Assembly: GCA_965644295.1 (NCBI GenBank)
Contig: CBFFRP010000423.1
Span: 124,001 to 188,000 of the forward strand
Source: Paraphysomonas bandaiensis
Taxonomy: Eukaryota; Protista; Chrysophyceae
DNA length: 64,000 bases
Direction: 5' to 3'
The position numbers were made by a program, and so were the translations under genes. The notes beneath the pieces were generated by a model. It had not been told where the DNA came from. It worked only from the letters and a program-made list of their open reading frames with translations, and made no database searches. Shown here in pieces: positions 1,966-58,950 of the stretch; position 1 is the stretch's first letter, and every line of letters starts with the position of its first letter.

Positions 1966-4702
1966 TTAGACCCTTACAGTGATATGATGACAGCACCTTA
2001 CCTCTGATGGAATCATTTCAAGAAGCTGCTCGCACATAGCGAGATATCTCGTTGTGTCTGTCATGTACATGTCATACAAAACGAAGTGATGCCGAAATTT
2101 ATCGGGTTGGTTGTTTCGTATGAGCCAGTGAAACCTATGAGTGATCGGACAGGCATCTGGGTTTCCCGAGGAATCAGAGTATATGTACTCTGGTCCATAT
2201 TGCTTTACCATAAGTCCGAAGCATTTCTCGGCCAGAGATTCCCAATTGTCTGAATTCTCTGGTCGTCGCCAGCCCATCAATAAGGCAAGGTAAACCGTTC
2301 GGTGTACATTCGTTTCAGGAGGATGGTCATGAACTTTCGACATCGCTACCAAGAGGCGGTAGGCGATATGCGCCTGACCAGTATTAATATATGCCCCTGT
2401 AACTGCTTCAATGCTACGTGGACCCATAATGTAACCTTGATACAGCATTATCTACATTGAACAGAAGAGTAAAAGCCCTATCAATAATCTGTTACGCTTT
2501 GTTATACCTTGGATATATCCTGTATAGCGGAGAACATACTTTGTTGAGCTAACAAAGCTATCAAATCGCTGAACATTGATTGTGGCAATACACGTAGGCG
2601 AGAAAGTTTTTGCACCCCCCACAGAGAGGCCGACACACAAGACGGGTGGGCAGTCTTCAGTAGTAGAGATACAGTCATCGTAAGGGTATGAATCGTACGC
2701 CATTCTGCATCGCTGTTACACAGGTCTCGACAACACTTATTCTCCAGTGCAATCGACGCATCGTCGTCAACCGGCTCCACATACCCCTTTTCTTCCAGGA
2801 AATTGTAGAAAGCAATAATCTCCTCTACAGCTGCCTCTGATATCGCTTTTCGGCGGCTATCGTCGATCTGATGCAAAATAGTTATTTCTCGTTTTCCAGT
2901 TTCAGGGTCCACCCCTATCGCTTCTGGGACGGGGTGTGATGCCACTTTCTGAAATGCCCTGTCGGATTTATCGCCAATGTGTACCAATACCAGCTGTATA
3001 GCACTCTCTGTAGATATATGCTCCGGATGGAGTGGACAACGGTGAAGGAAATCCAACGCTGCGGTAAAAGTGTGTTGATCATACACAGGAGAAAAAAAGC
3101 TTTTAGAGATTCGTGAAGGGTCAACTGGAACAGCATAGACTGAAAGCAATGCGCCCATCAAGGCGTGTCTTATACGCTTACTACACTTTATGTCTGCATT
3201 ACAGTCATTCAAATAAAATTACTTCAGAAAGGTACATATGGAACAGCATTACCGAGCTTTTGGAGATCACCAGCCAATGCAGTGACTAGGTCGAGGGTAT
3301 CCTGCCTCGCTGCTGCCTCGGTACGCGTAGCTAACGATCGAAATGTAGACGCGTAAAATATCTCCGAGACTCTATGAAAATATTTCTGCTTCTCCGCTGA
3401 ATCAATATCAGCAAACGTGAACACATCTCGAAAGTCTCGCATGACAGTCGTAAACCACTCCTGTATCTCCCCATAATCGCAACTCAGATTGGGAAAAGAA
3501 TTAACAGCAGCAGTACACACAGCTGCAACTTGGACAGAGTCTTTTTGTCTCCCACCCAGAGCATACCGCATTCCACGTGCGTAGACAGCTTGCAATGGTT
3601 GTAAGGCTTGTCCACGCCCACCTTTCCCAGATGTAAGTGCCTGCATAATGCCTGTCAAGTCGCGAGAATAGTGCCCTTTACGTCGCTTGGGAAGCAGAGT
3701 GGAAAAGTAAAAGTGAATCATATCGTTTATTCTGGAGGCATTCGAACTGCAGTCAACACTGAGTGAGGCAAGAAGATCAAAAAAAGGCTCAAGTGCACGG
3801 TGATTATTAACATGGACGACCACCTCACTCAATAGTTTAAACTGTGTAAGAGTAAGATATCGCTGAACCTCCGCATTATGTCCATACCACTGAAGACAAG
3901 ATATCATCTGTCCCAAAGTATCCTCTTGAAGTCTTACAATTTTATTTCTTTCAAATAATTTTAATAATTTTAATAATTTTCCTTTATTTTCTTTACCATC
4001 TTTTAATAAATATTGAACTAATATATCCAAACCTTCATGTATCATATCGAGATTAGATATCTCATATTCTACTAATGATTGATATATATCATCATCATGA
4101 ATCCAATTCATAATAGTTTTGACATCACCACATCTTGAAAATGCTATAATACAATGAAAGAAATGATAGAATTTCATTGGATCATTTCTAGTATATAATT
4201 CCATAGCAATCTGATAGGATAGAGTTGTATAATTTAATAATATAGATGTGGATAATAGTTTTTCTAGTATTATTATAGATGTGTTTTGTATTGTCATTTC
4301 ATTCACTGATTCTATTAATTTATTAGAATAACTTGTTTGTAACATGATTTGATTGTATTCATCTAGATCTCCATTCTCATTTAAATAATAGTTTTTATTA
4401 TTCATATGATGATGTGGAGACATCATGTTAATAACGATAGATAGATAACGTGAATTATATTGATAGATAGAATGTGTATGTGTTGAGAGATGTGTATAGA
4501 GACGTCTAGAGAGATGTGGAGAGAGATGTGGAGAGAGATGCGTATAAGTAGAGAGGCGTCTAGAGAGATGTGGAGAGAGATGTGGAGAGAGATGCGTATA
4601 AGTAGAGAGGCGTCTAGAGAGATGTGGAGAGAGGCGTGTGGAGAGATGTGTATGAGTAGAGAGGCGTCTATGAGTAGTGAGACGTGTTGTAAGATATGAC
4701 AT
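1966..4702 (-). CDS. Uncharacterised ~873 aa protein, 3 exons, with Arg/Ser/His-rich N-terminus (possible mitochondrial presequence)
   Basis: ORFs 3224-4801, 2502-3212 and 1966-2448 join in frame through GT-AG introns 3252-3194 (phase 1) and 2507-2452 (phase 0). The first ATG in the ORF is at 4702 (MSYLTTRLTTHRRLST...). No family recognised. Confidence 0.7.
4487..4660. repeat. 54-bp tandem repeat built from 12-bp (GAGATGTGGAGA) subunits, inside the N-terminal coding region
   Basis: gcgtctagagagatgtggagagagatgtggagagagatgcgtataagtagagag about 2.5 times; encodes (HLSPHLSPHLSRRLSTYT)n on the minus strand. Confidence 0.9.
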
Positions 4703-4922
4703 TAGATGATATGATGAAATGATTGTTAGATATGAAAATATACGTAAAGAAAGTAGAATTGAATGATGAATAGTGTCATTCTTTGAAGTGGATTGTAACA
4801 AGAAGTGTGCATGTTTATACCAATCAGATAAGAGATGGATGAAGTGGAGTGACTACAGCAGTGGAGGTCAGAATACGCATGGTATACTCTGTATTCTATA
4901 TAAGGGATGGATGAACTGCTAC

Positions 4923-5192
4923 ATGTATGTATGTACGTATGTATGTATGTAGGTAGGTAGGTAGGTAGGTAGGTAGGTATGTAGGAGGTAGGTAGGTAGG
5001 TAGGTAGGTAGGTATGTAGGTAGGTATATATGTAGGTATGTATGTATGTATGTATGTATGTATGTATGTATGTATGTATGTATGTATGTATGTATGTATG
5101 TATGTATGTATGTATGTATGTATGTATGTATGTATGTATGTATGTATGTATGTATGTATGTATGTATGTATGTATGTATGTATGTATGTATG
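4923..5192. repeat. Compound (TAGG)n/(TATG)n microsatellite, left part of retrotransposon target
   Basis: Read directly from the sequence; abuts the LTR at 5193. Confidence 0.98.
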
Positions 5193-5479
5193 CGCAGAGA
5201 AAAATACGGTACTCGGTCGAATGATACGGATGTTACTAATCAATAAACGGACGGAATACCCCCGTTGCTTTTACACAGTCTACACTACAGGTAGTCAAAG
5301 CAAGGTTCTCTTTATAGTTACTACAGAACTTCTCAGTAAGAGGAAATTATGCCTCTATTCTACAGCCGTACACTACACACTGCATAATATAACACCATAC
5401 ACCTCTATGTGCCCTATGCATATCTTATACAGTCACTTCAAGTACTAAACTGAAAAGAACATCCTCTCATTCCTCTACG
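5193..5479 (-). repeat. 3' LTR (287 bp)
   Basis: Identical by eye to 9891-10177; preceded on the element strand by a short purine run ACAGGGG-TG (putative PPT, 5480-5488). Confidence 0.95.
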
Positions 5480-5495
5480 CACCCCTGTGATGTGT

Positions 5496-8400
5496 CTACT
5501 CGTTCCCAACGATCAGACATATCAAATGACGAAACAATTTTCCTTGTAGGGGTTTAGTCAGCACATCAGCCAACATCTCTCCTGTAGGTAAGTACTGAAG
5601 CTTCACGTCTCCCCTATCATGGTGTTCTTCGACTAAAGCCTGCCTTACTCGTAGATATTTCGATCGGTATTTGCCTCCTCCTTTCGTTACGAGACTGAGA
5701 TTCGACAAGTTGTCCTGATAAATAACAGGTGGGTCAAGCGCATAGCCCTGCCCACACACAAACTCATGTAATCTCATTGCATTAGACATCATATCAGATA
5801 GGCCGACCAGCTCGGATTCGGTCGAGTCTTTCGTCACGATTCGTTGCTTAGTTGATCGGCATAGTACTGCGGCCCCTCCAAGCTGTACAACTACGCCTGT
5901 ATGCCCTTTTCCGTCATCGTGGGTGGCGAACGAAGCGTCGATGAAGCTTCTTACCCGCAGCTGCTCTCCAATCTTCAGCTGCAGATCTTGATCCCTTGTG
6001 TGCGCAAGGTATTTCAGCACTCGATTCAACTTCTGCTGATCTCCGATAGTCGGACCCTTCACTCTTGTTGTGAGGTACGCTATACTGAGCAGGATGTCTG
6101 GTCTAACTCTTATTGACAGATATAGCAATTTGGCCACCACTGAATGGAAATTGGCAGCCTCCTTCCTCCCCAATTTCTGTCCTGCGCCCTCTGCGAACAG
6201 TGATGATGTCGCTGGAGATGCTGCTCTGCCAGTGACCGCTGCCTCCTCCAGCACTCCGTCTAGGTAAGCCCTCATTGACACCACTGCCCTGTCATCTATC
6301 ATGCTCACATGCATACCTAAATACGACATGTCTTTGTCATCACAGTATTTTACCTCACCATATTGTTTCTTTAGTTGTTCCACCAACCACTCGGTGTCAC
6401 GCTTGTCTTGTGATAGCACTAGCAGATCGTCCACGTGTAGTGTTATAGTGCACTGCTTGCCGTTGACAGTCCTATTGAGAACACACTGATCCACCGGGTT
6501 AGCCACGAAACCAATGCTCTCCAGGTAAGCTCTTATCGTGTTGTACCAGAGCTTGGCGCTCTGCACGCATCCATATAACGCTTTGTCTAGGCGCACCAAT
6601 ATTTTGCCTCTTTCATCAACATACGGCTGGATTGTGGGGTCTAGTTTTCTGAGTATTGTGGCCAACATCGGCTCCAATTCCATTATTACCTCTTCGCCTG
6701 ACATCTCCGCATTGAGGTATGCACCACCTATATCAATTGTCGATACATGTCTCCCCTCTCTCGCTGCTATTGCTAGGCATGCAAATACTGACTGTATGTC
6801 CACAGTGGGTGACGACGTGTCTGGGTACAGTTTCCGATCCTGCTGTGCCCCGTTCGCAACCAGCCTCGCCTTGATTTTCTCGAACCTTCCGAGTCCGTCG
6901 TATTTCGTCTTCAAAAACATCAGCGATCGAATTGTTCGTTTGAGTTGAGTCTTTGATAGGTCACTCCGGTGTACTGGAACTATCGCCTTTTTTTCATGCA
7001 GCAGCTGCTTCAGCTCCCGTACTATCGCCAGGTAGGCTTCTTTGCCGTGTTCCTTTAAACCTTTGGTTACGCTTGTGTGATAGGCTCGATACATTACGGG
7101 CTTTCTTCTTGTGCCTGCCGCTATCCTTGCTCCGGCTGATGATGATGATAGTACTTCGCTTGTATTGTGTGTCATCCCTGCAGTTTCCACCCCTGTAATT
7201 TCCGGATTGTCGATGTCGTTGGGTGTTGCAGCGCCCGGTTCCTGTTCGCTCGGCCCATCAGCCCTGTCGCCATCATCGTCGACTAGTTCCGTGATTTTTG
7301 TTCTCTCTCTCTCTTCTGTGTGGGCGTGCACTTCGTCTGTGTCAACTGCTGTCATCTGCCCCTCCTCGTGAGGCTCCTTCGGCTTATCGATCTTGTCATT
7401 CTCAGCTGGTGGCGTGGTATCCTCGATCTCTCGACTCTCATTCTCACTGGTCGTGACAGGTGAGTGTGACTTGTTGTGCAATGACGATATTCTATTCACG
7501 GCGTCTATTACTATTTGCGTGGTCACCATCTTCACCCAGTTGGTCCTACTCACATATTTATTTGTTTTAAGGTTTAAAAATATCCAACTCCCGTTTGCGT
7601 TGCCGGATGGGTACAGCGCGATACATGGTTCTGTTCTGTCCTGCTCCGCGTTATTGCTCTTGACCTTCGGGTCATAGCATTCTACGTAGTCCCCGAAAGC
7701 CAGTGACAGTTCCTTTTTATAATTGGGTTTCCGACCAGTCAATGCCACTCGCGGTGCTACAGTTGTGCCATTGGTGGATGGCCTCCTCAAGTTCATGCGG
7801 CTGTTGGCGTATCTCACCAGGTCTCTGACGTTGGCATCTGGTAGGTTCCATGGTAGCCCTGAATGTACACTGCGTATTGTCTCTTTGAGTCGCCTAATCT
7901 TCGCGTCGATCTTGTCCAGGTGATCTCCAGCCCCTGCCACGTCAATCTCCATCCCTGTGATTTTGCCTCTCAGGGCCTTGAATCCCGGCTGAGGGTCCAG
8001 GTAGGTAACTGTCGGTATGTACCCGTAGCTTCTTAACAGGTTTACTTGTTCCTGTAGGGCCAATCCCAACTGATCCGTTGTTTCGTTTTCGAGTGAAGTA
8101 ACGATGGTTAGTCCCAATGGTTCCGCTAGTGTGAGCATGAACGATTGCTGTCTCACACTGAAGATGTCTGTGTACAGCCTTAGCTCCTTCTGCTGTTCTG
8201 CCTTCAGTTCCGGATCCGCGTGTTGCCGGCTGACTTTCTTATTCGTCTGCTTGCCTCTCACCGCTTCGAACGGTCTCCCATATATGTCAAAAGCTCTTCT
8301 GATATCACTCGGGGTAAGTCGCACCCCTGTAACGTTTCCGTCGCTCACTAGCTGCACAGCATCTCTCTCCGAGTCGAAGCCCGAGTTTCGGATCAGGTCT

Positions 8401-9878
8401 CGTGCTTCTCGCGCTCTCGCGACTTCTACTTTCGAATATTGGGCTTCGCGCTCCGCTACAGTCGTTACGTTGACTTTGGCCGTCGCCCAGTCGCGCATGT
8501 CGGCCACATACATCTTGTTCTTTCGATAGAAAGTCAAATCACTGTCAGGTAAGTGGACAGTGAAAGACTCTCCCTGCCTATATGTCACTTCATATATGTC
8601 TTCTACGTCCGCCTGACATAGCACGCTTGCCCTTAGCTCATCTGCTGTCTTACAGGTGAAGAATTGGTCTAGCTCGCCTACATTCGGTAGTTCCAGTGCG
8701 TGTCCCGATAATCCCGCCACGGTGCATCCTCTGGACGCCGGTCTTACATTGTTCAGTAGTCTTGGGTGTACTACCGAGACATCCGCCTGATTGTCGAGTA
8801 ATACTTCGTACCATTGGAATGGCTCGCTTCCTGACGTGAAGGCGTTCAACATTGTTGTCGTGCAGTGCTTGTTTTCTGATTCTTGGCTACTGTCTGGGCA
8901 TTCGTTCATTCTGTGGCCTGGCTCACCGCAGCCCCAACATATGAGCTGCCTTTTTTTCTGACCACGTTTGCTGTTGTGTGACTTCGTGTCGTTCCCTTGT
9001 TGCTGCTCTGGTGTATCATCGCTATCTGCTGATTTCTTGCCTTTTTCAGACTTCGATTTGCTCACGAATGCGGATCCGCCGCCTGCTCTCGTTGCTCTCT
9101 TCGGCGCTAGATATTTTGATGCTTTAGTATATATTTCATTCACATGCGTAGGTGCTGTTTGCGTTCCCATTGTTAGATCGTTGAGATAGCTAGTTTTGAA
9201 CTCGCCATATCTCGTGTCGTCCAGCCCTTCGAAGAAATCCATCGCGATGTCCTCTTCATTCATTTCCGCGTTGTTCATGTCTTTGTAGGCTTCTAATAGA
9301 TGATCAAACCTCTCCTTATAAGTAACTATACTCTCATATGCTCCCTGTTTAGCGTCTTTGTACCTTTTCCTCGCTTCTGCTCGTACCACTGTACTTACGC
9401 TGGAGTTAGTGGATACTTTGTGGGTTTGTTTGATAGCCAGCCATAGTAGTAGAGGATCCTTAGTCCAGTTCATGAGCTCGTATTCATCTAATAGCTTGAC
9501 TGCATCCATTGATTCGTGGCTCAGATGGTCTACCATGAATGAGTAGAATGCCGATCTATCGTTCCGCATCTTGTCTATTAATCTCCCTCTGGTCTTGGTC
9601 TTGTCCTTCATCAGGTCGAGGTTAACTCCATAGGGGTCGTCTTCCAAATCAAAATCCTCTGGGTTTATCGCATCGGGCTCATAATATTTGTCCAGCTCTA
9701 CTAGGCGTGCAAGATCACCGTACTTTTGCATGCCCACCACTACAAGCCTCTGTTTGAATGTGGCGAAGTTCGAGTTGGCACCGTATCTTAAAGTCGGTAC
9801 ATGTTCTGGTCTATCGGTGCTCGGTTTCTTGCCGAATCTTGCAAATCTTGTTGGCTTGTCGTTCGTTGTCTTCTTCAT
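5496..9878 (-). CDS. Gag-Pol polyprotein (Gag zinc knuckle, protease, integrase, RT, RNase H)
   Basis: CWGCGEPGHRMNEC (CX2CX4HX4C); LLDNQADVSV protease-like site; YTDIF/YLDPQ/KIDAK integrase; KARLVANG, IDIGGAYLNA, KALYGCVQSA, LHVDD (Copia RT); IDASFA, STESE, YQDN, ADVLTKPL (RNase H). No stops or frameshifts. Confidence 0.97.
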   Translation of the reverse strand: MKKTTNDKPTRFARFGKKPSTDRPEHVPTLRYGANSNFATFKQRLVVVGMQKYGDLARLVELDKYYEPDAINPEDFDLEDDPYGVNLDLMKDKTKTRGRLIDKMRNDRSAFYSFMVDHLSHESMDAVKLLDEYELMNWTKDPLLLWLAIKQTHKVSTNSSVSTVVRAEARKRYKDAKQGAYESIVTYKERFDHLLEAYKDMNNAEMNEEDIAMDFFEGLDDTRYGEFKTSYLNDLTMGTQTAPTHVNEIYTKASKYLAPKRATRAGGGSAFVSKSKSEKGKKSADSDDTPEQQQGNDTKSHNSKRGQKKRQLICWGCGEPGHRMNECPDSSQESENKHCTTTMLNAFTSGSEPFQWYEVLLDNQADVSVVHPRLLNNVRPASRGCTVAGLSGHALELPNVGELDQFFTCKTADELRASVLCQADVEDIYEVTYRQGESFTVHLPDSDLTFYRKNKMYVADMRDWATAKVNVTTVAEREAQYSKVEVARAREARDLIRNSGFDSERDAVQLVSDGNVTGVRLTPSDIRRAFDIYGRPFEAVRGKQTNKKVSRQHADPELKAEQQKELRLYTDIFSVRQQSFMLTLAEPLGLTIVTSLENETTDQLGLALQEQVNLLRSYGYIPTVTYLDPQPGFKALRGKITGMEIDVAGAGDHLDKIDAKIRRLKETIRSVHSGLPWNLPDANVRDLVRYANSRMNLRRPSTNGTTVAPRVALTGRKPNYKKELSLAFGDYVECYDPKVKSNNAEQDRTEPCIALYPSGNANGSWIFLNLKTNKYVSRTNWVKMVTTQIVIDAVNRISSLHNKSHSPVTTSENESREIEDTTPPAENDKIDKPKEPHEEGQMTAVDTDEVHAHTEERERTKITELVDDDGDRADGPSEQEPGAATPNDIDNPEITGVETAGMTHNTSEVLSSSSAGARIAAGTRRKPVMYRAYHTSVTKGLKEHGKEAYLAIVRELKQLLHEKKAIVPVHRSDLSKTQLKRTIRSLMFLKTKYDGLGRFEKIKARLVANGAQQDRKLYPDTSSPTVDIQSVFACLAIAAREGRHVSTIDIGGAYLNAEMSGEEVIMELEPMLATILRKLDPTIQPYVDERGKILVRLDKALYGCVQSAKLWYNTIRAYLESIGFVANPVDQCVLNRTVNGKQCTITLHVDDLLVLSQDKRDTEWLVEQLKKQYGEVKYCDDKDMSYLGMHVSMIDDRAVVSMRAYLDGVLEEAAVTGRAASPATSSLFAEGAGQKLGRKEAANFHSVVAKLLYLSIRVRPDILLSIAYLTTRVKGPTIGDQQKLNRVLKYLAHTRDQDLQLKIGEQLRVRSFIDASFATHDDGKGHTGVVVQLGGAAVLCRSTKQRIVTKDSTESELVGLSDMMSNAMRLHEFVCGQGYALDPPVIYQDNLSNLSLVTKGGGKYRSKYLRVRQALVEEHHDRGDVKLQYLPTGEMLADVLTKPLQGKLFRHLICLIVGNE

Positions 9879-9891
9879 AATTTCCTCTTAC
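9876..9891 (-). promoter_or_regulatory. Primer-binding-site position, complementary to the element's own LTR (10034-10049); overlaps the gag ATG
   Basis: + strand 9876-9891 cataatttcctcttac is the exact reverse complement of 10034-10049 gtaagaggaaattatg; no TGG tRNA-type PBS present. Confidence 0.75.
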
Positions 9892-10177
9892 GCAGAGAAA
9901 AATACGGTACTCGGTCGAATGATACGGATGTTACTAATCAATAAACGGACGGAATACCCCCGTTGCTTTTACACAGTCTACACTACAGGTAGTCAAAGCA
10001 AGGTTCTCTTTATAGTTACTACAGAACTTCTCAGTAAGAGGAAATTATGCCTCTATTCTACAGCCGTACACTACACACTGCATAATATAACACCATACAC
10101 CTCTATGTGCCCTATGCATATCTTATACAGTCACTTCAAGTACTAAACTGAAAAGAACATCCTCTCATTCCTCTACG
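9891..10177 (-). repeat. 5' LTR (287 bp)
   Basis: Identical to 5193-5479; element strand begins CGTAGAG and ends CTCTGCG (6/7 terminal inverted repeat). Confidence 0.95.
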
Positions 10178-10540
10178 GTATGTATGTATGTATGTATGTA
10201 TGTATGTATGTATGTATGTATGTATGTATGTATGTATGTAGGTATGTATGTATGTATGTATGTATGTATGTATGTATGTATGTATGTATGTATGTATGTA
10301 TGTATGTATGTATGTATGTATGTATGTATGTATGTATGTACGTATGTATGTATGTATGTATGTATGTATGTATGTATGTATGTATGTATGTATGTAGGTA
10401 TGTATGTATGTATGTATGTATGTATGTATGTATGTATGTATGTATGTATGTATGTATGTATGTATGTATGTATGTATGTATGTATGTATGTATGTATGTA
10501 TGTATGTATGTATGTATGTATGTATGTATGTATGTATGTA
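10178..10540. repeat. (TATG)n microsatellite, right part of retrotransposon target
   Basis: About 90 TATG units with rare TAGG/TACG variants. Confidence 0.98.
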
Positions 10541-10638: not shown

Positions 10639-13561
10639 ATGCTCGCATTATCAATCTTTCTCGCATCAACTGCTACTGCTGCAGTCAGCAGCCAAATAAA
10701 AATAGAGAAGAGTACTATCAATGTATTAAACTCAGAGACTCTACCGGGTAATCTCTTACCTAATTTCCTCTTCCAACAAGGATCTATTGAAGGTGGAAGT
10801 GTCGGGGTACATATTGGAGGTGGTAAGGGTGAACCACATCCATTTATTCCTGATGATACTTGTGGCGATGATATATTTGAGGGGGCTATGGAGGATATGC
10901 GGTATGTTTCATATGTTTGTTTGTATGTATATACGTATATACATATATGTGTGTATATATATTATTGTAATTTACTATTAATTACTATATTTTACTATTA
11001 GATACTGTTAGTTACTATTTTTTGTTTTTAATTTATTGCGATAATATATCACTCTGTTGGCATTCTTGTAGATCCCCCCAGCTTCCCTATCTAACTCAGG
11101 ACCTATGGACGTGCGATCGTACACCCGAGGATATTCCCGTTTGGACAATGGAGACCGATGAGCTCAAGGTGACCATCACTCCTCAGTTTGCTGGTAAGGT
11201 TTGGGCTATTTATGATAAGGTGCGAGAGCGCGATATCCTCTACAACAACCGTGCCCACCAGCCTGCCAATATTGGAGCTCTGAAGGCCTGGGCTGCCGGT
11301 GGTGCTGAGTGGAATTGGTGCGTTTTGCGCTTTATATATTATCTAGAGGATTTTTATTTGTGTATTCTGTTACTAGGTCACCTGGTCATGTTGGACACAG
11401 TGCATTTTCAGAGACGGAGGTGTATCTAACCAAAGTGGACACCTCCGCCGGACCTATGCTCCGTGTACACGAGTTCGACCGCTACAATGGAACCGTCTGG
11501 CAGGTGGATATGATAATCGCTAATGGGAGCTTCATTGCCCATCCACGCATTACCAATCCCACCCCACACGATCAACGTGGCTACTGGTGGACATGGTGAC
11601 AGAATATATGACTTTGTGTCTATACACCGTGACGTATTTTGCAGCGTTGCTGTTGAGGCGAAGACCTCTACTCGTATCTTAACCCCTGCCACACATGTTG
11701 CTGAGACATCGCGTGAGCCAATGAGAGATGCCCCATGGCCATACTTTGCAGAGGCTATCGAGAATAGCACTTTCAAAGTAGGTGTTTCTCTATTAATCGG
11801 AATGCATCTTTATGTAAATATTCTTTATTGCAGGGATATGATGGCGAGTGGCCCACTGACAACTCCTACCTCGGAAACCACCAGCTCGGCGACATGTTCC
11901 TTCGGATTCCAGACAGTGTATACACTCCGTACATTGCACACACCCAGGAGGATGGATATGTGTTGGTACACGGCCACCCGCTAAACGGTGAGAATACTAT
12001 TCACGCTTAACTTGTTTTGTGGTAGGTTACTTGTTTTGTTACAGGAACCAAATTCTTTACCTGGGGAGATGGCGGACCTGGAAGGTTTATGCAAGACTTC
12101 CTTGCAGGTGGAGGAAAGAGACAGGGTGATTACACTGAACTCCAGGTGGGACCCGCCCCGACACAAATGCAGAACTTCCCGGTGCCTAAGAATACTGTTT
12201 TGGAATGGACTGAGTGGTGAGATTGTAATCATGATGATTAGTTATGCGATTGTTAATGGTGTTAAGCTACTGATTCTGGGTGTCTCTTGTGTCCTTTGAG
12301 TAATAATATTTGTGAAGGTTCAAGGGATTTGATGGTGATGTAAGCGTTCTCCGTGGCGACGACTATCAGAAGGCTCTTGACGAAATTGATACATGGATGA
12401 AAAGCTCCGAGGGTATGACTCAGGAAACTGTGCATGACTGGGACGCTTTCTTTGAGAAATACGCCACTGTTGAGCCCAGCGAGGTGCTGTTTTTATCTAC
12501 GTGCATTTCAATGTTGTTGTTATCTAATAAACGCGTCCTGCTGTGCAGATTTTAGTACGTGGGCAGCCTTGGGGAGCTCTTGAGGAAAAGCTTTTGGGGC
12601 AGAGACTTGCACCTGGCCTCGTTTTCGACCTTCCCAGCAAGGGTGAGGAGGGGTACGAGGAGATGCTACCCTGGATGGAGCTATTGAGCGACGGAACTTT
12701 CTCGGATGCAACTCTTTCTCGCCTTCCACTTTCATATCAAACCACTGACAACTGGTTTAAGGTCATCAAAGAGTCTGCCGACCGGGGGATGACCTGGCTG
12801 CATGCTCTCCACATTGCTATCAATCTGATTGAGCGTGGTGATGTCGAGGAGCCAAGAAACATCCTCAAGCAGTCCATGGAGCTCAAGCCTAATCCCATTG
12901 CTGCACGCAATCTAGCTATCCTTTGTCAGACATACGAGGAAGCCTGGCCACATTTCATGGTGAGTTGCAGTTATCCTCAATTCACGCACCCTTACTTTCT
13001 GTCTGTACGATTATAGGCTGCATGGGAAATCTTGCAGCAGGGCGAATGGCGTAATGATCCCGCTTACGAGAGACTCACTCGCAATTTGGTAACTGAGATG
13101 AGTTTCTTGCTTCAGCAGGAGGGATGGTACTCTCGCATGGAGGAGTGGGTGAAGGTGGTTCCAGAGTTTGCCCGTGATCTGGATGCCTTCGTGACCCTCC
13201 AGAGCAAACTGGCAATTCACAATGGCCAGTTTTCTGAGGCTCTTGAAATTCTCGGTGCCAATTGCTTTCCAACATACGCAAGCGCCAGAGATGATCTCAT
13301 GGATATGTGGAACACAGCGCAGGTATGTATATCGGATGCGTTACGAATTAGTATATTGATGAATCTTTCGTTGTTAATAGGAGGGACTGGCTGCTCAGAA
13401 GAAAGGCTCTCCTCTGAGTTTCGTGGAAGCTCATCAAGTTCGTGTTGCTAACCCAGTCCCTGAGAATATCGGGTGCAAGTACGCTTCCGAGGTTTGTTGC
13501 TCAGAATTAGTAATAGTTACTTTTTAACGTGCATATGCAGTACTGCACAAACTACTGGTAA
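10639..13561 (+). CDS. Secreted DUF5107-domain protein with TPR-like C-terminal half (multi-exon)
   Basis: Signal peptide MLALSIFLASTATA. METDELKVTITPQFAGKVWAIYDK..DILYNN..QPANIGALKAWAAGGAEWNW resembles the DUF5107 signature (LPELGGRI..QPANL..AW.SGGIEWN). About 10 short introns; last exon YCTNYW* at 13541-13561. Confidence 0.75.
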
Positions 13562-17831: not shown

Positions 17832-20800
17832 ATGGAGGGTGTATCACGGCAGTTAAGTGCTGATACAGATACTGATGAATGGAGCAGTACATCGCCTGAT
17901 ATTGTTGTACATAGTCGTAGACGTGCTACACGTGTTAATATTCTTGAAGCTACTAGTGTGGCATTTATTTCTGAAGAACAAGTTCATAGAATTCGCTCTG
18001 TGTTAGCACGATTGATTGAATTAGCACCTGTTAAACGCACCGATCATATGCTAAAGGCAAGAGCGTTTATTTTATGGTCAGAGAAGCATCCCCTCTATCA
18101 AAAGTGTGATGAGCTGGCAAAACAACTACAAGAACGGGCACTAGCGTTAAAAACATTGAAAGAAGCGTATTTGAGGGATGTTGTGAGGTATTGAAAAAAT
18201 ATCAACCGTGTTATTTTATTCTGACGAAATACATAAGTGTGAAATTCCAGTTGGAGCGATATTATAAAGACCATAACATGGAGGTTGAGTCCAGGGAACT
18301 TACAAGTATTCCCAGTGCAGATCTTCGTTCCCTTGTTTATTCATCTCAGTCAGAGGATTCATCCAACCAGCTTCGGCACACGGTTATGAAAGCTCACTTG
18401 GTTTCACAGGAAGAGTCAAAGAAGTGGACAGCTAACCCATGGGAAAAGAGCAAGTCGTACAAGGCTTTCAAGAACATAGAAACCGACGGTAGATTCTCTA
18501 TGCCACCTGGAGGAAATTCTATCAACTTATACGCCCCTTCTCGACACCGTCTCTTTGTTCGTTACTGCAAGCAGTGCATTGGAATTATGACACTCGTAGA
18601 GGAGTGGAATCAGGACGTGGAGAAATCATTTTACAGGCGAATTGAGGGGAAAACGAATGAAGAATTGAGGCAAGTTATTCGCAATCTCAATGAATTTATT
18701 TTGGAACAATCAAAAGAAATTGAAAACCTTCAGAGAGACTTGGATGCAGTACGAAAGGGCTCGCATTGGTTTGACACATGGAAAGAAACCACACACTTTG
18801 ACGAAGATATGAAGCTGAAGGCTAATCGATTCAGGTGCATAAATATAGATTGGTTGGTGTAATATAATGTTCTGAGGTACTCTATATACAGAGAATTATA
18901 TATACGTTGGAATAACGAAGCGCAAATGTGTCATGAGGAGAAGGAGGAAATTCGGAGGCAACTGAAAGCAACCAAACTTAGACTCAAAGAATCTGAGGAA
19001 CAGTTTGAGAGTACAGTAGCATCCATGAAAGAGAATTACGAAAGTGCAAGAGAAGAGTGGGAGGCGGAGCGTAGTGCTCTTAAGAGAGATATATACGAAA
19101 GAGACAGCTTATTAGATGAGAAAGACGTTATGGTCGAGCGAATGACTACAGAGGTCAAAAAAGCAGTTGATGAAAAGGAGAGATTTGAGAGAATAAACAA
19201 GCAGCTACTAGCTTCGATTGATGAAAAAGATAAAATTCTCAGTGAGTATAGAGAAGAAGCAGTGAATCATATAGAGAGTCTTAACACTCAAGTTCATATG
19301 TTAAACCAAGATGTTGAAATGGCAGACGCTGAGAAAGACCGATTGCTTGAGGAGCTGGAGCGCCTGAAGTACGGGGACAATGGTGCTACTAGTAATGCGG
19401 AAGAGAAAGTCGAGGCGAGTGCAGAGATTGGTGAAAAAGTCTATGATGAAGCTTCTGCCCTAGGTGGCGTCACTAATACTAGTGCTACTCTCAGCGCTGA
19501 GGAGTCGATGAGAATTCGCAAGGAATACCTAATTAACAAAATGCGGGCAGTTATATCTGTCATTCCTCGAAGACTACGCAGTCACATTGCCACGAACATA
19601 GAACGATTTGCACCAGTGGTAGCTGATAATTTCACACAAGCCGAATCGAAGCGTTCTACTAGTAGTCGTGTAGCATCTCCAGAACAAGGGTATATGAGAA
19701 ACGAACTAGATCGGTTCAGTGAGGTGGATGACGAGGATTGTGATGAGGTGTCACTTCTAAGTGATGGTGCTCCGGATGCTAATCTGGGAAATCAAGAAGC
19801 TCTACTCACTTCACTTGAGGGGGAAAAGCCAGTTTCAGCTGGAATTTCAAGGACGGTCGAACAGCAACCTCAGCAAAAAGAATCTACGCCATCTAATGCA
19901 TGTGATTATCACACATCCGTACAAGACGAGAATGATGGCGAAGCACCCATTCGCTGGAGGGAGTCGTCACAAAGAAACCAGCGCAGAAGTATATCTTCAT
20001 CTCGGGCGCCGCCACGAACTGTGTCTCACAAGCAGAGTGCAACTGAATCAAGTAGTGATACTCATGTCGATGGACAGCGGTTTAGTCAGCCAATTGTATT
20101 GGATGAGAATAATAATATGCCGTCCCGTCCGAGGAGCGGTAGCAGTGTCAAATCAGTAGAGATTGATAGGGGAACGAAACCTAGTTCTCAGTCTACCGAT
20201 CATCCTGCAGAAGAAAACTCGAATTATCAGTCGATATCTCGACAGCACAGCGAGGATATTGTGTTTCCATCTGTAGAAGCTGCTGAAATTGATTGTAAAG
20301 TGCAGGCTGATACGAAGCCTAGTTCAGCGAGGCTTCGTTCATTGTCAAGGGCTAGAAGTAGCGGAACAATATCTTCTGTTGGAGACTCATGTGATGCTGA
20401 CGATGCATCTGACATGTCGCGCCCTATTCTGAATGTGAGACGTCATGCAAGCAAGACGAAATTAGCGGCAGATATCGCCCCGCTTATTAGGGTTGACACT
20501 ACGGATAGCTCAGATTCGTATTCCGCTGCGGGACGTGGGTCCAAGGCCGCGATTATTCCGACGCAGATTATTCGAGCTCGTAGTCAGATTATGCGACAGC
20601 TTTCATCTCTACAAGATTCTATTCCGGAGGAGTCCGACAGGGATAGGGAAATGAGTGTGTCCTGTGTTGAACCTGGTCAGTCCGCAGCATCTAGTTCGCA
20701 ATTAATAGCGGACTATCATGAGGGTGTTTCGGACTTACTAGGGTTGATAGCCCCGTATATTAGACCTCCTATGTCCTTGAAAATTGCAGCCATATGCGTT

Positions 20801-22720
20801 CGGTTTTGTGTAAAGTTCAGGCGAGCGCTAGACAAAAGAGACCCATCTCAGTTAGGATCATTTGGGCAACGAATCCTTATTAAACGACACGAAAAATGTA
20901 ATGATGAGCTGCATCGACGTCTCAGCGTAGTCACTGAAAGCAGTGCACATGTTGAACATTCAAAGCGTGAATTCATGCTGCAAAAAAATCAGATGGCAGC
21001 GCGTATAAAACAATTGGAGCAAGAGGTAATTGTGTATCGGAAGGAACAAAGGCATTTCAAAAAGGATATGTGGGAACTGAAGATAGATGTTCTGCGGCAG
21101 CACATAATGGGCCAATGGCAGCGAACAATGGCCCATGACCTAGCCGAGTTGGTGAAGCTAATGAGGATGAGGCTCTACGGGATGATTAACTCCAATTTTG
21201 AGACATCAGTGACGATGGGTTCAGATATGACCGAATCATCAGCAGAGGGAAAGATGCAACTGCATCATGTGCATGGAAAATTGCGTGCACTGGTTGCGGA
21301 AATGACTAAATGGAGCCGAGAGCATAAAGAAGAACATCCAGTTAGAGACTTGCAACTAGGATATTTCAATTCATTTCAGGGATATGGGTCGAAAATTCGA
21401 AATGAAGAACGCGCACTGAAGATACTCGCCCGTGCCGCAAAGTGTGATTTAATTCAAGTGGAGAAGAGGTGGAATGCTAAGGTTGAAAAGGTTCGGTCAG
21501 TTGAGGTAAAATACAAGGAGGTTGTGAAGTCGAAACAGTGCCCTACTTGTGTAGAATATGAGCGAGTGTTCCTCAGTCAGAACGGGAAATCGACGAAGGA
21601 TAGCATGAGTTGGTCTGAATTTGGACTTGTAGCAACCTTACAGTCGGGAGGCAGTGGGGGTAATACTGCAGAGCGAGTGAAGAAACTATTGCAATCTCTT
21701 CCAGCAGACCAGTTGAACGGGGTAAAAGAGTCTATTAAAGAGGCAATATTTCATGATGTTGTCGAAGAAGAACAAAAGAAAGCGGAGACTGTAATGCGTG
21801 AAAAGGTTTCTAAATACCTTGAGAAAGAGTACGACTTGCACAATCAGATAAATGATCTCAATGTGCAGATAATGGAAAAGGAGAAAGCTGCAGCAAGAAT
21901 AGAAGAATCGAAGGCACAGGATTTTTCTCGAATATTAACTGAGCGCGATGATTTGAGGGACACAGTTAGAGATCTGACTCGCCAGAATCTCGTCCTCCGT
22001 ACTGCTGTTCGAGATAGCTATAAGGTGACTCAGATGGAAGAGGAAGAACTAGCACGTACACAGGAGATTATGCGTGAAATGGAGAGAAAATCAAATCCTC
22101 CTAAATCTGATAAATCTACTCAAGTTGATGGGGACGACCAGTCATCACTTGGGGAGGAGTCAATAATGCTAGATCAGACCGACATCGTGCTTCAGGCAAA
22201 GGCACGTAATTTTTTTGCGCGTATGAGTGTTGTAGATCCTACAACTATTGGTGGGGAACAGCCCACTTGGGGATCTTCTAGAATATCTCATCCAGAGGAG
22301 CGTCCCTCTGTTACTGATGCTATGTCTACTGTTACCAATGCAAAGTCGAAATTCCGCCAACTGAAAAATATTCCTATTGGTGTCTCCAGAAAAGTCATCA
22401 GAGAAGCGACGGCTTACGGTGAAATGGATGACCGCAACACGTCTCGCATGGCAGCACACTTGCAGGCGGGGAGCATGAAATACGGGCGCTCAGATGCTCT
22501 CGCTCTTTCACGACAAAGTGAAAGTACTGAGGAACTCCATAAATTTGGCTCTACGCCAATGACTTCAGAATCAGGCAAACGTAGACCAGAATCTGCTCGT
22601 GAAGTCACATCTGTTATGAAAAGTGGCGTACCAATTCGTACTGGCATTGCCACTCACGGTTACAGGAAAAAATCTTTCCGACCAGAATCGGCTCCTAGCC
22701 ATCGAAAAAAGAGTACTTGA
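17832..22720 (+). CDS. Large (~1,590 aa) coiled-coil / low-complexity protein of unknown function, 3 exons
   Basis: ORFs 17832-18194, 18191-18862 and 18926-22720 can be linked by short introns near 18187-18237 and 18835-18891; long E/K/Q heptad stretches and Ser-rich disordered regions. Confidence 0.75.
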
Positions 22721-23154: not shown

Positions 23155-24658
23155 CTACGCTGAGGAGTTCTCAGACGTAGAAATAATAGTTTTCTCGTCT
23201 ATTAACTTAGACGTTGACGCGTTCATTCCCTCCTCACTTTCGTCATCCTCCAGCTCCTCTATGAAATAGTAAGTAATAACCATCCCTACAACAGAGAGAC
23301 AAGCACAGAGAGTCATCACCGTAGGCAGAGAAGTAACGTCGACCACAGCACCAAAAATGTAGGCACCAGCAACTGCCCCAAGTTTACCAGAAGCTGCAGA
23401 CAAGCCGTTCATGGTGGACCTAACCTCCTTCGGATAGACAGTGGAAGGAATGACATATGTTGTGACATTGGGTCCAAACTGCAGAGCAAAAAGGAGGAAG
23501 CAGTACATAGCAAAGAGAACATCGGGGAAATGTTTTTTGAGAGGAAAGAAACAAACAGCCATTACTACAAATCCAATAGCTGTCAGAAAAAAACCAGCAA
23601 TCTGAAGATTTTTCAATGTCATGTACGGCATCAAGGATATGGTTAGTATCACCCCAGGGATGCCCATAGATAGTGCTACTAACTGCTTCCAGGATAGCTG
23701 AACGATGCTATGATCCGATGAAATGTCGTCTGACTCCCCTCCCATCGAGTCCAGTATCTCCCCTCCAAATAGACCCACACCATAATAGCAAACGTCAAAT
23801 ATAAACCACGACCCACCAGTGCCGATAAGTTTTAGCCAGACATCCTTATGCTCTATGGCCTCCGCGACTATGCTCTCCTTTCGATATATATCGTTGATGT
23901 CAAGACTGGGCTTATGGGTTCTCTCATACCGCTGTTCGTTCTCCAGCATTACACAGATGAGTACAATCGTGCCAGGAATCACACCAAGTCCAAGAAGAAG
24001 TCGCCAACGCATGTTAGTAGAAAGGTCCGAGGCGGTGAAAATAAGAGCCAAAATCCAAGGAGCCAGGGACCCAGGTGTCTGCCAGAAGAACGACTTAGCT
24101 GAAGCGGCTGGGTTTGTCCCACCCGAAGATGCATCTTCTGCGGCTTTGGTAGCAGCCAGTGGATAAACACCACCCAAACCAATGCCCAAAAAGAATCGGC
24201 AGATAATAATTGTCATATATTTCTGGGTGGCATCTCCCATTGGTAGAACAGCTGAAAATAGTGCAGAGATAATAGCAATGAATTGAGTTAATCCCATTGC
24301 ATTCGTTCTACCCATCACCTATATAATATTTCATTAATATATATATATATATGTATGTATATAGACTTACATCCCCTGCATAACCCATACATAATTGTCC
24401 AGCAATTGATCCAGCAAATACAACAGCAGTAGCTGAACTAAGTACCCATGTTTCTTGTTCACCATCTTTACAATCATCTTTATCTTTTGTACATACAGAT
24501 ACACTCATAACTATTAATGCCACTGATATTGCTTGATAATTCATTTGTACACCAAAATTACCAACTGTGGTAATAATTGTGGATAATACTGAAGCTTTCT
24601 TATCTTTAGCATGTGACATATATCGTGGTCGATGTAATGCTTTCGTTAATTCAGACAT
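23155..24658 (-). CDS. MFS inorganic phosphate:H+ symporter (PHO84/PHT1-like); intron 24370-24319
   Basis: GQLCMGYAGDVMGR, RFFLGIGLGGVYPLAA, WRLLLGLG, LIGTGGSWFIFDVCYYG, QFGPNVTTYVIPSTVYPKEVRSTMNGLSAASGKLGA are PHS-family motifs. Confidence 0.9.
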
Positions 24659-54518: not shown

Positions 54519-57500
54519 CTAAATGATATCAAAAGGGGGCAGCACATGTCTTGTGGTGTCCCTCTGTGGTGGTTCATAATGATAGGTACCATCTATTCGA
54601 AGAAATTCCGGTCGGATGGTCCCCGCCTCTGATTCAAGTTATGTCAGCTAATGATGCTTACCATTAGAGGGTTCACCATGGGGTAGATCCGTGCTTGAAG
54701 CGTCTCTCTCAGGATGCGGAGAACTTACGCTCGGTGCGGTTTGATAAGGGTAGCAAGAATAAGGTGACATATGCATTCCATATCCAGCATATCCAGGTGG
54801 GAACCTGTATGATGGGGGCGGTGATGGCATGAGAGGAGAATATGGGGGGTAGTGGACGGTTGCAGGGTCGTTTGGGCACGGAAGTGGATGTGTTGCAGGC
54901 TCAGAACTACTAGATGCACTTTCGTTATGTGTACTATTCTACAAGCAAACGCGTTATGGAAATATATATGGCTATCAGTAAAATATCCATTGGAAGCTAA
55001 GCCAAACTCAAGATGCTCAATAAGTAAATTACCTGTGGGTCTCTCTTCTGGTCTAAGTAAGGTGGCATCGGCCAACCTCCTGGAAAGCCCATAAATGGCA
55101 CTCGGGGATCATATGGCACAGGAATAGGGATGAACATAGGCTGCGGTGCGTGTCCTCCGGCGGGCTTCCCCACACCTAGAGGTACGGACATGGGCATCCC
55201 GTATGGTAAACACATGTAGGGGTTAACCGGGGGAGAGTACTGAGTACTATCTGTTCCTGAATTGGCAGTTGGAATAGATGAATATAATGTTCCAGTTGGC
55301 AAACTCATGAACGGTGAATGAAAAATATTGGGGTATTCAGTTGGTGGGCCAGCGTGGGAACTGCCGTCGGGATTATTTGAAGAAGTCGATGAGTTGTCTT
55401 GCGTGGATTCATAACGCGGCTGCTTTTCAGGAGGTCCATTTTCGTCACTGTTAGATTTTCCCGGACGAGTGGTCAATGCAGCTGGAGGTTCTGTCTGTGA
55501 TCCTTGCAGATTGCATCTCATGATATCACTACGACGGTGTTCCTCTGATGGAAAATGACTTGAACTAAGATGTGTTGGAGGGGTTGCCACAGTTGATTGA
55601 TGCAGATTAAAGGGCACACCCATTTGATTTGTCTGACCCATCTGCATAGGGTGATAAGCCATAATATGTACTTGTGAACCTCCAGAATGCTCCGCGTTGT
55701 AAGGGTGACCAGCCAATGTTCCCCCACCCCGTAACGCGAGATGATGTTGATGAAGCCGTTCAATATTATCTAAACCCATACCAATTGACCCCACACGACG
55801 CATTTTACGCTCTAGACTATGCCATTGCACCTGATGTACACAGCAAATAAGAGTCCTCAATACCAAATGAATACATAATAAAACGAACTTAACAGAGGGA
55901 AGTTTCACCGTACAAGTATGCATGGCATGTATGCAATCGTTGAGTGAGCCTACCTTGAGAGAGGTTGGTGTGCGTCTCTTGTTTGGGTCCTTTACGGGCA
56001 ACATTTCCGCTATTTCCTATATATCAAGACAGATGACAAATAACATACTACCGATATTCCACTATACCTTCCATTTGTTGCCTAGACGAGCCTGCGCTCT
56101 CAGAATTATTACATCTTCGTCGAGAGTAAAAGGGGAATTGTCAATAGTGGGACTCAAATATTCATTCCAGCGTTCTCTACATTGTTTTGCACTACACGCG
56201 CATGTGAAACACATGCAATTTCTCATATCATGGACAGTATATACCTCCGGTTGTCGAACTTGGATGCAATCGAGGCCCAATCAATGTTTTGTCCCGCCGA
56301 TTCAACTAGATCTGTTAACTTTTTGTCTTCATCAGGATACCAGTATCCCTATAAATATGAATAGTAAGCATAAAAGTTTAAAATTAATGAGATCTATATA
56401 CTTTTTTAGGGGCGGATATACTTCTAGTCGCTTCACTCTTAGGAGCAGTAGAGGTGGAACTAGAACTTGCAGTGACACCTATACTGTCAGTGGAACTGTC
56501 TGTGGCACTAGTGTTCTGAGTCTATAAATAATTGCGTTACACATTATATAAAACAATACTAATACAAAACATATACCTCTTCACAATAAATAACAATATA
56601 TACTTATATTATATATACATGTATATATATTACATGTACCTCTATATAACAACACATGTAACATATGCATGTATACGTATCATTTGAACATATCTATATA
56701 ACAATATATGGTTATAACATATGCAGGTATATCTATTATATGCTCCTCTATATAGCAATTCATACATACATATATTACATATACATTAACTATAACATAT
56801 GTATGTATGTATGTATGTATGTATAATACATGTACCTCTATATAACAATATATGCACATATAACATACGCATGTATATGTATTACATACACCTCTAATAA
56901 CAATATATGCTGACATAACATATGCATGTATATATACTATATGTACCTCTATATAACAATATCTATAGATGACATATGCATGTATAGACACTACATTACC
57001 TCTATAAAACAATGCATACATACATATGCAGGAATAGATATTGCATGTATCTCTCTACATCAATGCATACATACAAACATACATATCAACATATGCATGA
57101 ATATGAATTACATGTACCTCACATACATATGTTATACCTCTATATAACAACATATACATAACTATCATATGTATGTATATGAATTACATGTATCTCTATA
57201 CAACAATGCATACATACATATGCCTGTATAGATATTACATGTATCTCTCTACAACAACAAAAACACCGATGAACATATGCATGTATATGAATTACATATA
57301 CCTCTATATAACAATACATTAACTATAATATATGTATGTATAGATACTACATGTACCTCTATATAGCAATATATGCTTACATGACATATGCATGGATATG
57401 AATTACATGTACCTCTCTATAACAACACATACATATCTAACATATGTATGCATACATACTACATGTGCCTCGATAACAATGCATACATACATATGCATGG

Positions 57501-58950
57501 ATATGAAATACATGTACCTCTATATAACAATATATGCACATCTATCATATGTATGAAACGATATTACATGTACCTCTCAATAACATTACATGCATACATA
57601 TGCATGGTTATGAATTACATGTACCTCTATATAACAATATATGCTTACATGACATATGCATGAATATGAATTACATGTACCTCTCTATAACAACACATAC
57701 ATATCTAACATATGTATGCATACATACTACATGTGCCTCGATAACAATGCATACATACATATGCATGGATATGAAATACATGTACCTCTCTATAACAACA
57801 CATACATATCTATCATATGTATGAATCGATATTACATGTACCTCTCAATAACATTACATGCATACATATGCATGGTTATGAATTACATGTGCCTCTATAT
57901 AACAATATATGCTTACATGACATATGCATGAATATGAATTACATGTACCTCTCTATAACAACACATACATATCTAACATATGTATGCATACATACTACAT
58001 GTGCCTCGATAACAATGCATACATACATATGCATGGATATGAAATACATGTACCTCTCTATAACAACACATACATATCTATCATATGTATGAATCGATAT
58101 TACATGTACCTCTCAGTAACATTACATGCATACATATGCATGGTTATGAATTACATGTACCTCTATATAACAATATATGCTTACATGACATATGCATGAA
58201 TATGAAATATGTGTACCTCTCTATAAAACAACGCATATATATCTAACATATGTATGTATAGTTATTACATGTGTCTTTAAATAGCATTGCATACATACCT
58301 ATACATGTATAGATACTACATGTATTAATGTATAACGGAATTACATGTACCTCTATATAACAATACACACATATCTAACATATGGATGTATATGAACAAC
58401 ACACATACATACATATGCATGTATATGAATTACATATATCTCTAAATAACAATACACATATACATACGTACATATGCATGGATATGAATTACATGTACCT
58501 CTATATAACAATACACACACATATGAACATATGCATGGATATGAATTACATGTACCTCTATAAACAACACATACATATCTAATATATGCATGTATATGAA
58601 TTACATGTATCTCTATAAAACAATGCATACTTGCATATGCATGAATATGAATTACATGTACCTCTATATAACAATACATACATACACACATACATACAAA
58701 CATACATATCTAACAGTACATTAAACTATATACAGTATAATACACTTACACTTAATATAGATTCATCACTTCTTTGTTCATTTCCTTTCTCTATCCCCAA
58801 TGTATCATATGATGGTTGATCTGTTGAAATTGGATTAGTTTTCTTCTCATCAATTGATAAATTCTCATGATATCCTTCTATTGATGTAATCTCTGATTTA
58901 TTTAAATGAATTGTATTTGAATTATTGATTTGATCTTTCTCATTATTCAT
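54519..58950 (-). CDS. R2R3 Myb-type transcription factor with Pro-rich C-terminus; first intron 58749-56522 is satellite-filled
   Basis: KGYWYPDEDKKL..DWASIASKFDNRR|SAKQCRERWNEYLSPTIDNSPFTLDEDVIILRAQARLGNKWK|EIAEMLP; exon phases match across introns; the 3' end is tentative. Confidence 0.8.
56600..58700. repeat. Intronic satellite: ~49-56-bp monomer with a 268-bp pentameric higher-order repeat (about 3 copies, ~57340-58200)
   Basis: Monomer core catatgcatggatatgaattacatgtacctctatataaca; near-identical spurious ORFs start at 57388, 57656 and 57924 (268-bp period). Confidence 0.92.

Follow-up and report, generated by a model that had tools for sequence, protein, structure and literature searches.

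The 64-kb stretch of Paraphysomonas bandaiensis DNA analyzed here (64,000 nucleotides (nt) of contig CBFFRP010000423.1, assembly GCA_965644295.1; hereafter the window) carries on its minus strand a complete long terminal repeat (LTR) retrotransposon, in which two LTRs enclose one uninterrupted gag-pol open reading frame (ORF). At the junction of the 5' LTR and the leader, where a primer-binding site (PBS) is expected, lies a 16-nt segment with perfect complementarity to a segment inside the element's own LTR, and this pair of arms, together with its probable use in priming reverse transcription with the element's own RNA, is the subject of this report. The insertion is hosted by a long (TACA)n microsatellite (4910-5192 and 10178 to about 10500), and the LTR boundaries were set by the target-site duplication together with the phase of this flanking repeat, since excising the element with one copy of CATAC restores the repeat phase of the microsatellite. 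The features are listed below from the 5' to the 3' side of the element, i.e., in the order of falling coordinates.

10178-10182, minus strand: target-site duplication CATAC, 5' side, within the (TACA)n microsatellite
9891-10177, minus strand: 5' LTR, 287 nt, a 100% identical direct repeat of 5193-5479, with termini 5'-CG...CG-3'
10083-10089, minus strand: TATA-like TATATTA, which precedes the LTR arm by 40 nt and is not conserved in relatives
10034-10049, minus strand: LTR-internal arm CATAATTTCCTCTTAC, exact complement of 9876-9891, proposed self-primer and proposed start of R
9892-10033, minus strand: R-U5 segment enclosed by the duplex, 142 nt, putative strong-stop template
9876-9891, minus strand: proposed PBS GTAAGAGGAAATTATG, of which the first G is the last LTR base and the last three bases are the gag ATG
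5496-9878, minus strand: single gag-pol ORF, 1460 amino acids (aa)
8895-8939, minus strand: nucleocapsid (NC) zinc knuckle (CCHC), aa 314-328 of the gag-pol ORF
6225-6932, minus strand: reverse transcriptase (RT), Pfam match to RVT_2, aa 983-1218
5480-5486, minus strand: polypurine-tract core AGGGGTG, directly upstream of the 3' LTR; relatives carry the same motif before their 3' LTR
5193-5479, minus strand: 3' LTR, 287 nt, 100% identical to the 5' LTR
5336-5351, minus strand: the same arm in the 3' LTR, an exact match, proposed start of the 3' R
5188-5192, minus strand: target-site duplication CATAC, 3' side, completing the 5-bp duplication

Almost all of the leader is taken up by one arm. 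The 3' end of the LTR reads ...TTTTTCTCTGCG (also given as ...TCTCTGCG), and TAAGAGGAAATTATG comes next. A TGG is absent after the 5' LTR, the gag-pol start codon closes the 16-mer, and nothing else stands between LTR and ORF, so that the overlap of the ATG with the arm leaves no space for an alternative PBS. Positions 9891-9876 and 10049-10034 are complementary at 16 of 16 positions, compared with a longest complement averaging 7.4 nt and never exceeding 11 nt in 100 shuffled leaders. Within the window the arm complement has no exact copies beyond 10049-10034 and 5351-5336. A match with two mismatches at 10759-10774 was put down to chance, and no element fragment was detected elsewhere in the window by blastn or tblastn. 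The first-pass annotation had described a Copia element with no TGG at this place, an exact 16-nt complement at 10049-10034, a TATATTA at 10083-10089 and a TATAAA at 10014-10009, downstream of the LTR arm; on re-reading the sequence all of these were found as placed, and the assignment to Copia was borne out by a match to the Copia-type RT of Pfam, RVT_2, at E=1e-26.

That match scores 94.5 bits against a cutoff of 31.6, and the Gypsy-type RT, RVT_1, is matched only at E=0.12. By RT type the element belongs to Ty1/Copia (Pseudoviridae), and membership in the Tf1/sushi group of Ty3/Gypsy is ruled out by the Copia-type RT together with the probable domain order. As to the latter, only about 240 aa remain after the RT in the 1460-aa ORF, which leaves no room for an integrase behind RT and RNase H, and invariant columns of the D/D/E type are found in the approximately 600 aa between NC and RT; for these two reasons the integrase is most plausibly placed in that interval, upstream of RT. 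Neither the integrase (rve) nor the protease was matched in Pfam at E<=10 or in a profile search against PDB sequences. An Rfam scan of the element returned only sub-threshold matches to miRNA models, all of them on the microsatellite.

The identical LTRs, the intact ORF and the clean target duplication indicate that this copy was probably active in the recent past. An ORF on a Tara Oceans metagenome contig (L001) is 99% identical to that of the window at the nucleotide level, and within the window itself there are no other copies or fragments of the element (blastn and tblastn). The LTR termini are CG...CG, not the canonical TG...CA, ends that point to an integrase that may tolerate or even prefer CG termini. 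Several close relatives (L002, L014, L086, L087) likewise begin with CG after the AGGGGTG polypurine core, and in more distant relatives the LTR starts with TG and ends with CA. Between the window element and L002 the LTRs are 87% identical (93-100% over the central 200 nt), in contrast to 72% nucleotide and 75% protein identity for the ORF, so that either the LTR is more constrained than the coding sequence or LTRs have been exchanged by recombination.

The RNA running from 10049 to 9870 folds with the 16-bp duplex at its terminus in both the minimum free energy (MFE) and the centroid structure (-51.1 kcal/mol, z=-4.4), and the duplex is likewise present in the MFE and centroid folds of eight relatives; since the folded segments were chosen to begin at the arm, these folds speak for feasibility and are not independent proof. 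Next to the duplex, the fold of the window element has a further helix of 6 bp, with no consistent equivalent in the eight relatives.

Conservation and covariation of the arms in related elements

A protein search returned 168 homologues, all with PF07727, which come mostly from marine and freshwater metagenomes and include one from a Chaetoceros transcriptome. We gathered 95 related loci, many of which are LTR-collapsed, circularly permuted contigs that show one LTR and the leader. On one 10.8-kb contig three copies of the PBS arm (L043:115, 5376 and 10637) recur with a spacing of 5261 nt, which could be explained by elements arrayed in tandem with shared LTRs or by an assembly that goes more than once around a circular or collapsed form. 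For the full-length relatives, the roughly 100 nt before the gag start were compared with the non-coding sequence and the longest perfect complement was recorded; anchoring of the gag start by tblastn added the families L015, L026, L031, L035, L053 and L054.

Nearly every full-length relative has a perfect match of 12-17 nt between leader and LTR, the sequence of which differs by family (e.g. the PBS arms of L003, L005, L008, L013, L019, L021, L068 and L082). At 31 loci the arms measure at least 12 nt and beat every shuffle. The distinct arm families number 22 by strict deduplication and 26 when grouped by reading, and four further families recognized later (L086, L087, L088 and L094) bring the total to about 30. 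One locus that initially appeared to be armless, L081, has a 14-nt arm once its true ATG is used. Protein identity among the relatives with arms ranges from 30 to 99%, and no major branch of the protein tree lacks the pairing, which extends to the most basal branches (L039 and L068/L073) and down to 30% identity with the window element.

When leaders and LTRs of 30 elements were swapped, the median longest match was 14 nt with the own LTR and 8 nt with the LTR of another element. At least 13 nt were reached by only 10 of the 870 cross-pairs, all of them between the near-identical families window/L001/L002 and L003/L084/L085, and the real leaders of unrelated elements never matched real LTRs over more than 12 nt. 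Across the clade, three or four kinds of Watson-Crick pair occur at each of the first 12 pair positions counted from the junction. At four adjacent PBS positions L019 and L021, which are sister elements, differ from each other, and the LTR arm carries a compensating change for each of the four. These counts were anchored at the junction, because a MAFFT alignment of R-U5-PBS from 20 loci reached only 26% column identity and placed the arms out of register; anchored pairs are Watson-Crick by construction, and their significance rests on the shuffle and swap controls. Directly outside the duplex, on both sides, complementarity is no better than chance, the mean pairwise identity of the PBS arms is 0.42, and the distance between the LTR partner and the PBS arm varies from 46 to 200 nt. 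The complementarity is thus conserved, with covariation, across a deep clade, and is neither a product of chance nor specific to one copy.

Two other explanations bear directly on these data. The arms are 84% A+T, a composition in which inverted repeats can arise by chance; as an account of the 16-mers this is refuted by the shuffle and swap controls, by recurrence at the same site in about 30 families and by the statistic for the arm edge given below, and we consider its probability negligible. In the second account priming is conventional, with the 3' end of a host tRNA or a half-tRNA as the primer, the arrangement of copia, Ty5 and FunCo1, and the LTR complement would be incidental. Most Copia elements do use tRNA-iMet or half-tRNAs (PMC6317226), the TAAGAG of the window PBS is shared with the half-tRNA-Lys PBS reported for the fungal FunCo1, and the primer would be a host tRNA fragment with the 3' end ...CCUCUUAC-3'. 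Such priming is very unlikely, given the missing TGG and the fact that the PBS differs among about 30 families, each matching its own LTR over 12-17 nt, whereas a shared primer would keep the PBSs alike. Scans found no tRNA gene in the window and no tRNA-like RNA in the element.

The arm always lies at the junction of LTR and leader. Flanking DNA fixes where the LTR ends on its 3' side in five loci (the window, L004, L073, L082 and L086), and in all five the PBS arm begins 0-2 nt before that end (up to 3 nt at the ambiguous end of L073); in the other loci the arm is preceded by a conserved motif of the U5 end, TTTTCTAYC/AAC/ACA. Its distance from the gag ATG is 1-30 nt in most families. Such a place is what defines a PBS, and no second PBS fits between the LTR end and the gag start.

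This placement also bears on a reading in which the 5' panhandle is a regulatory or packaging structure, serving control of gag translation, circularization of the RNA or dimerization, and priming occurs by other means. A duplex that abuts or overlaps the gag AUG, and which would be cap-proximal if the arm is the 5' end of the RNA, is expected to affect translation, and Ty1 is reported to use long-range 5' pairings in reverse transcription (PMC3592414). Control of translation does not, however, require an arm that starts so close to the LTR end in five of five loci (0-2 nt, up to 3 at one ambiguous end). No other PBS candidate has room between LTR and ATG, and the pairing has the polarity that priming needs, the 3' end of the 5' arm facing the U5 boundary. 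A purely regulatory role is accordingly improbable in our judgment.

Probable transcript start and the proposed self-priming model

In 22 of 26 families a CA dinucleotide marks the outer (5') edge of the LTR arm, the background frequency in the same LTRs being 0.16 (P=3.5e-14); the arm starts at the A in 12 families, just after the A in 8 and at the C in 2, and the four families added later (L086, L087, L088 and L094) also fit this pattern. A pyrimidine-A step is the general initiator rule of RNA polymerase II. The conserved initiator-like CA and the sharp end of the pairing at the same point fit a transcription start site (TSS) at the arm edge, such that the pairing, like that of Tf1, seems to start with the first or second transcribed base (+1 or +2). 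In the window element the TSS would be the A at 10048 or the C at 10049 and the primer the first 15-16 nt of the RNA; the extra C:G pair would derive from the G of the ATG. A conserved TATA upstream of the arm was not seen in the sequence contexts of the relatives.

The arm could also be internal, with a TSS further upstream in the LTR, and the element could be self-primed by a longer 5' fragment or by a copy supplied in trans from the 3' R. The TATA-like box of the window element, 40 nt upstream of the arm and thus rather far, would suit such a start, and the arm does occur near the 3' end of the RNA as well, in the 3' R. Complementarity nevertheless stops sharply at the conserved CA, as if the RNA ended there, and the RNA of Tf1 begins with the arm itself; for these reasons we think that an internal arm is improbable.

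The preferred reading, which we hold to be likely, is a Tf1-like one in which the 5' end of the element's own RNA acts as the primer for reverse transcription. Transcription would begin at the CA at 10049/10048 inside the LTR, and the first 15-16 nt of the RNA would fold back on the PBS at 9891-9876, closing the 142-nt R-U5 loop. The element's RNase H would then cleave at the 3' end of the 5' arm, and the freed 3'-OH would be extended through U5 and R to give minus-strand strong-stop DNA, after which the cycle would proceed as in other LTR elements. The geometry is suitable for these steps, as the 3' end of the LTR arm (the C at 10034) would face the last base of the LTR and its extension would copy the 142 nt of U5-R. 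In the standard model plus-strand strong-stop synthesis copies the primer and thereby regenerates the PBS, so that the two arms could convert each other in each cycle; mutual conversion through primer copying may be why the arms are perfectly paired and yet drift freely in sequence. By analogy with the way retroviral primers are removed, it may be speculated that the one-base overlap of PBS and LTR reflects a primer nucleotide kept on the cDNA.

The first-pass annotation had proposed tRNA-independent self-priming with a transcript starting near 10049, and had named covariation of the two 16-mers across relatives as a check. That proposal gains strong support from pairing that is kept with differing sequences in about 30 families, from the position of the arm at the LTR junction and from the CA edge, the start near 10049 being itself a point that we infer. 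Several observations count against self-priming from the RNA 5' end or limit how firmly it can be held. The related contigs consist of DNA throughout, whether LTR-collapsed or genomic, and many are permuted with k-mer overlaps; none carries poly(A), and a check of all loci for 5' ends at the arm gave no information on the start, so that the TSS is placed from the anatomy of the arms. The A+T richness of the arms makes nominal probabilities overstate the significance, a difficulty resolved by the empirical swap control. In L002 the outermost position is mismatched (14+1), the arms of L011, L012 and L014 measure only 10-11 nt, and a few loci gave no arm, mostly those with an incomplete LTR or with a misplaced or unresolved gag start. 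From sequence alone, a start downstream of the arm, driven by the TATAAA at 10014-10009, is conceivable; it would leave the conserved CA edge unexplained. Lastly, we know of no experimental evidence of self-priming for any Copia element.

Neighboring features of the window

Outside the element, an ORF of 1264 aa on the plus strand (18926-22720), apparently rich in coiled coil, has no Pfam domain, and a search of 5.8 billion proteins gave no homologue at E<=0.001; it may be a lineage-specific host gene. A fragment of an inorganic phosphate transporter of the PHS family (major facilitator superfamily) lies on the minus strand at 23155-24318, with a best identity of 68%; its named relatives are from ochrophyte algae (Ectocarpus, Ochromonadaceae, chrysophytes and Chrysophaeum), which indicates a poorly sampled marine stramenopile alga as the host. 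No part of the window resembles human DNA. An A+T-rich satellite array at 56557-58686 has nested periods of about 107 and 268 nt, units up to 98% identical and a GC fraction of 0.29-0.31. Close by the element, beyond its 3' side, positions 4482-4670 hold tandem repeats of the GAGAGATGTG type with units of 12 and 54 nt, inside a program-called ORF on the minus strand (3224-4801).

Comparison with known self-priming and related elements

Self-priming has been demonstrated by experiment for Tf1 and Tf2 of S. pombe, for Tj1 and for the Tf1/sushi group of Ty3/Gypsy; in Tf1 the RNA's initial 11 bases pair with the PBS and RNase H cuts between bases 11 and 12 (PMC7175516, PMC4600332). The window element resembles this group in having a PBS beside the 5' LTR that is complementary to the start of its own putative R and not to a tRNA, in a polarity that leads into U5, and in an R-U5 segment looped out by the duplex. 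It differs in belonging to the Copia superfamily as defined by RVT_2, with the RT near the C-terminus, in a duplex of 12-17 bp across the clade in place of 11, in a PBS that begins at the last base of the LTR and in a gag AUG that abuts or overlaps the PBS; the U5-IR stem of Tf1 has no conserved equivalent helix across the relatives examined here. The Tf1 group has been tested at the bench, whereas the present clade is known from sequence.

Among Copia elements, the novelty implied by the first-pass annotation was overstated, as self-priming had already been put forward for Houba and Osr-1 and predicted in silico for the plant Ty1/Copia TAR lineage to which they belong (PMC6317226, citing Capy 2005). 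The likeness is that both are Copia elements without a tRNA-type PBS and are predicted self-primers; the hosts differ, being land plants for TAR and marine and freshwater protists here, a comparison made with the published description of TAR. The protease and integrase of the window clade, too divergent for Pfam, suggest a distant lineage. The fungal GalEa Copia elements (PMC5445492) similarly lack a tRNA PBS at the expected place; they have a local palindrome (the 'Conserved Hairpin Site') for which their authors found no complementary LTR sequence, whereas the partner here is in the LTR.

Also similar in general form are the CoDi (Copia of diatoms) families (Maumus et al. 2009, PMC2806351), some of which lack TG/CA termini, and which share with the window element, as judged from their description and not from reference sequences, a single Copia-like ORF, a length of about 5 kb, short LTRs and stramenopile algal hosts. 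The relative of the window element in a Chaetoceros transcriptome is a further hint in this direction. That paper does not discuss the PBS or priming, and within the literature searched we found no report of self-priming in diatom or stramenopile Copia elements. The reverse primer for the LTR of Blackbeard from P. tricornutum (PMC2806351) implies an LTR 3' end of ...GCAGTTTTCTAGTTTATC and a U5 end of ...TTTTCTAGTTTATC, resembling the TTTTCTAYC of the clade. Published CoDi1 elements may thus share the self-priming anatomy. A broader proposal is that self-priming is ancestral and universal in a deep, global CoDi-like Copia clade of stramenopile algae and independent of both Tf1/sushi and TAR, that the duplex at the gag AUG (cap-proximal if the arm is the RNA 5' end) also switches between translation and reverse transcription, and that the arms are matched by templated copying; taken as a whole, we regard it as tentative and somewhat doubtful.

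If these elements do prime themselves, they would escape defenses aimed at tRNA primers, e.g. the targeting of the PBS by 3' tRNA-derived fragments (3'-tRFs), and annotation tools that search LTR elements for tRNA complements would miss their PBS. The suggestion that hairpin priming or self-priming is old or recurrent among LTR retrotransposons, raised in PMC3601003, becomes testable in a second superfamily, and the window copy lends itself well to experiments, its LTRs being identical, its ORF intact and an ORF 99% identical to it present on a Tara Oceans contig.

To our knowledge, experimental proof of self-priming is limited to the Tf1 group of Ty3/Gypsy, and the case for Copia has consisted of in silico predictions for one plant lineage. 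To this the approximately 30 independent sequence versions of the pairing add a whole deep Copia clade from marine and lake plankton metagenomes. That Copia elements may prime themselves has been suggested before; a deep algal clade with comparative support is an extension of a known class.

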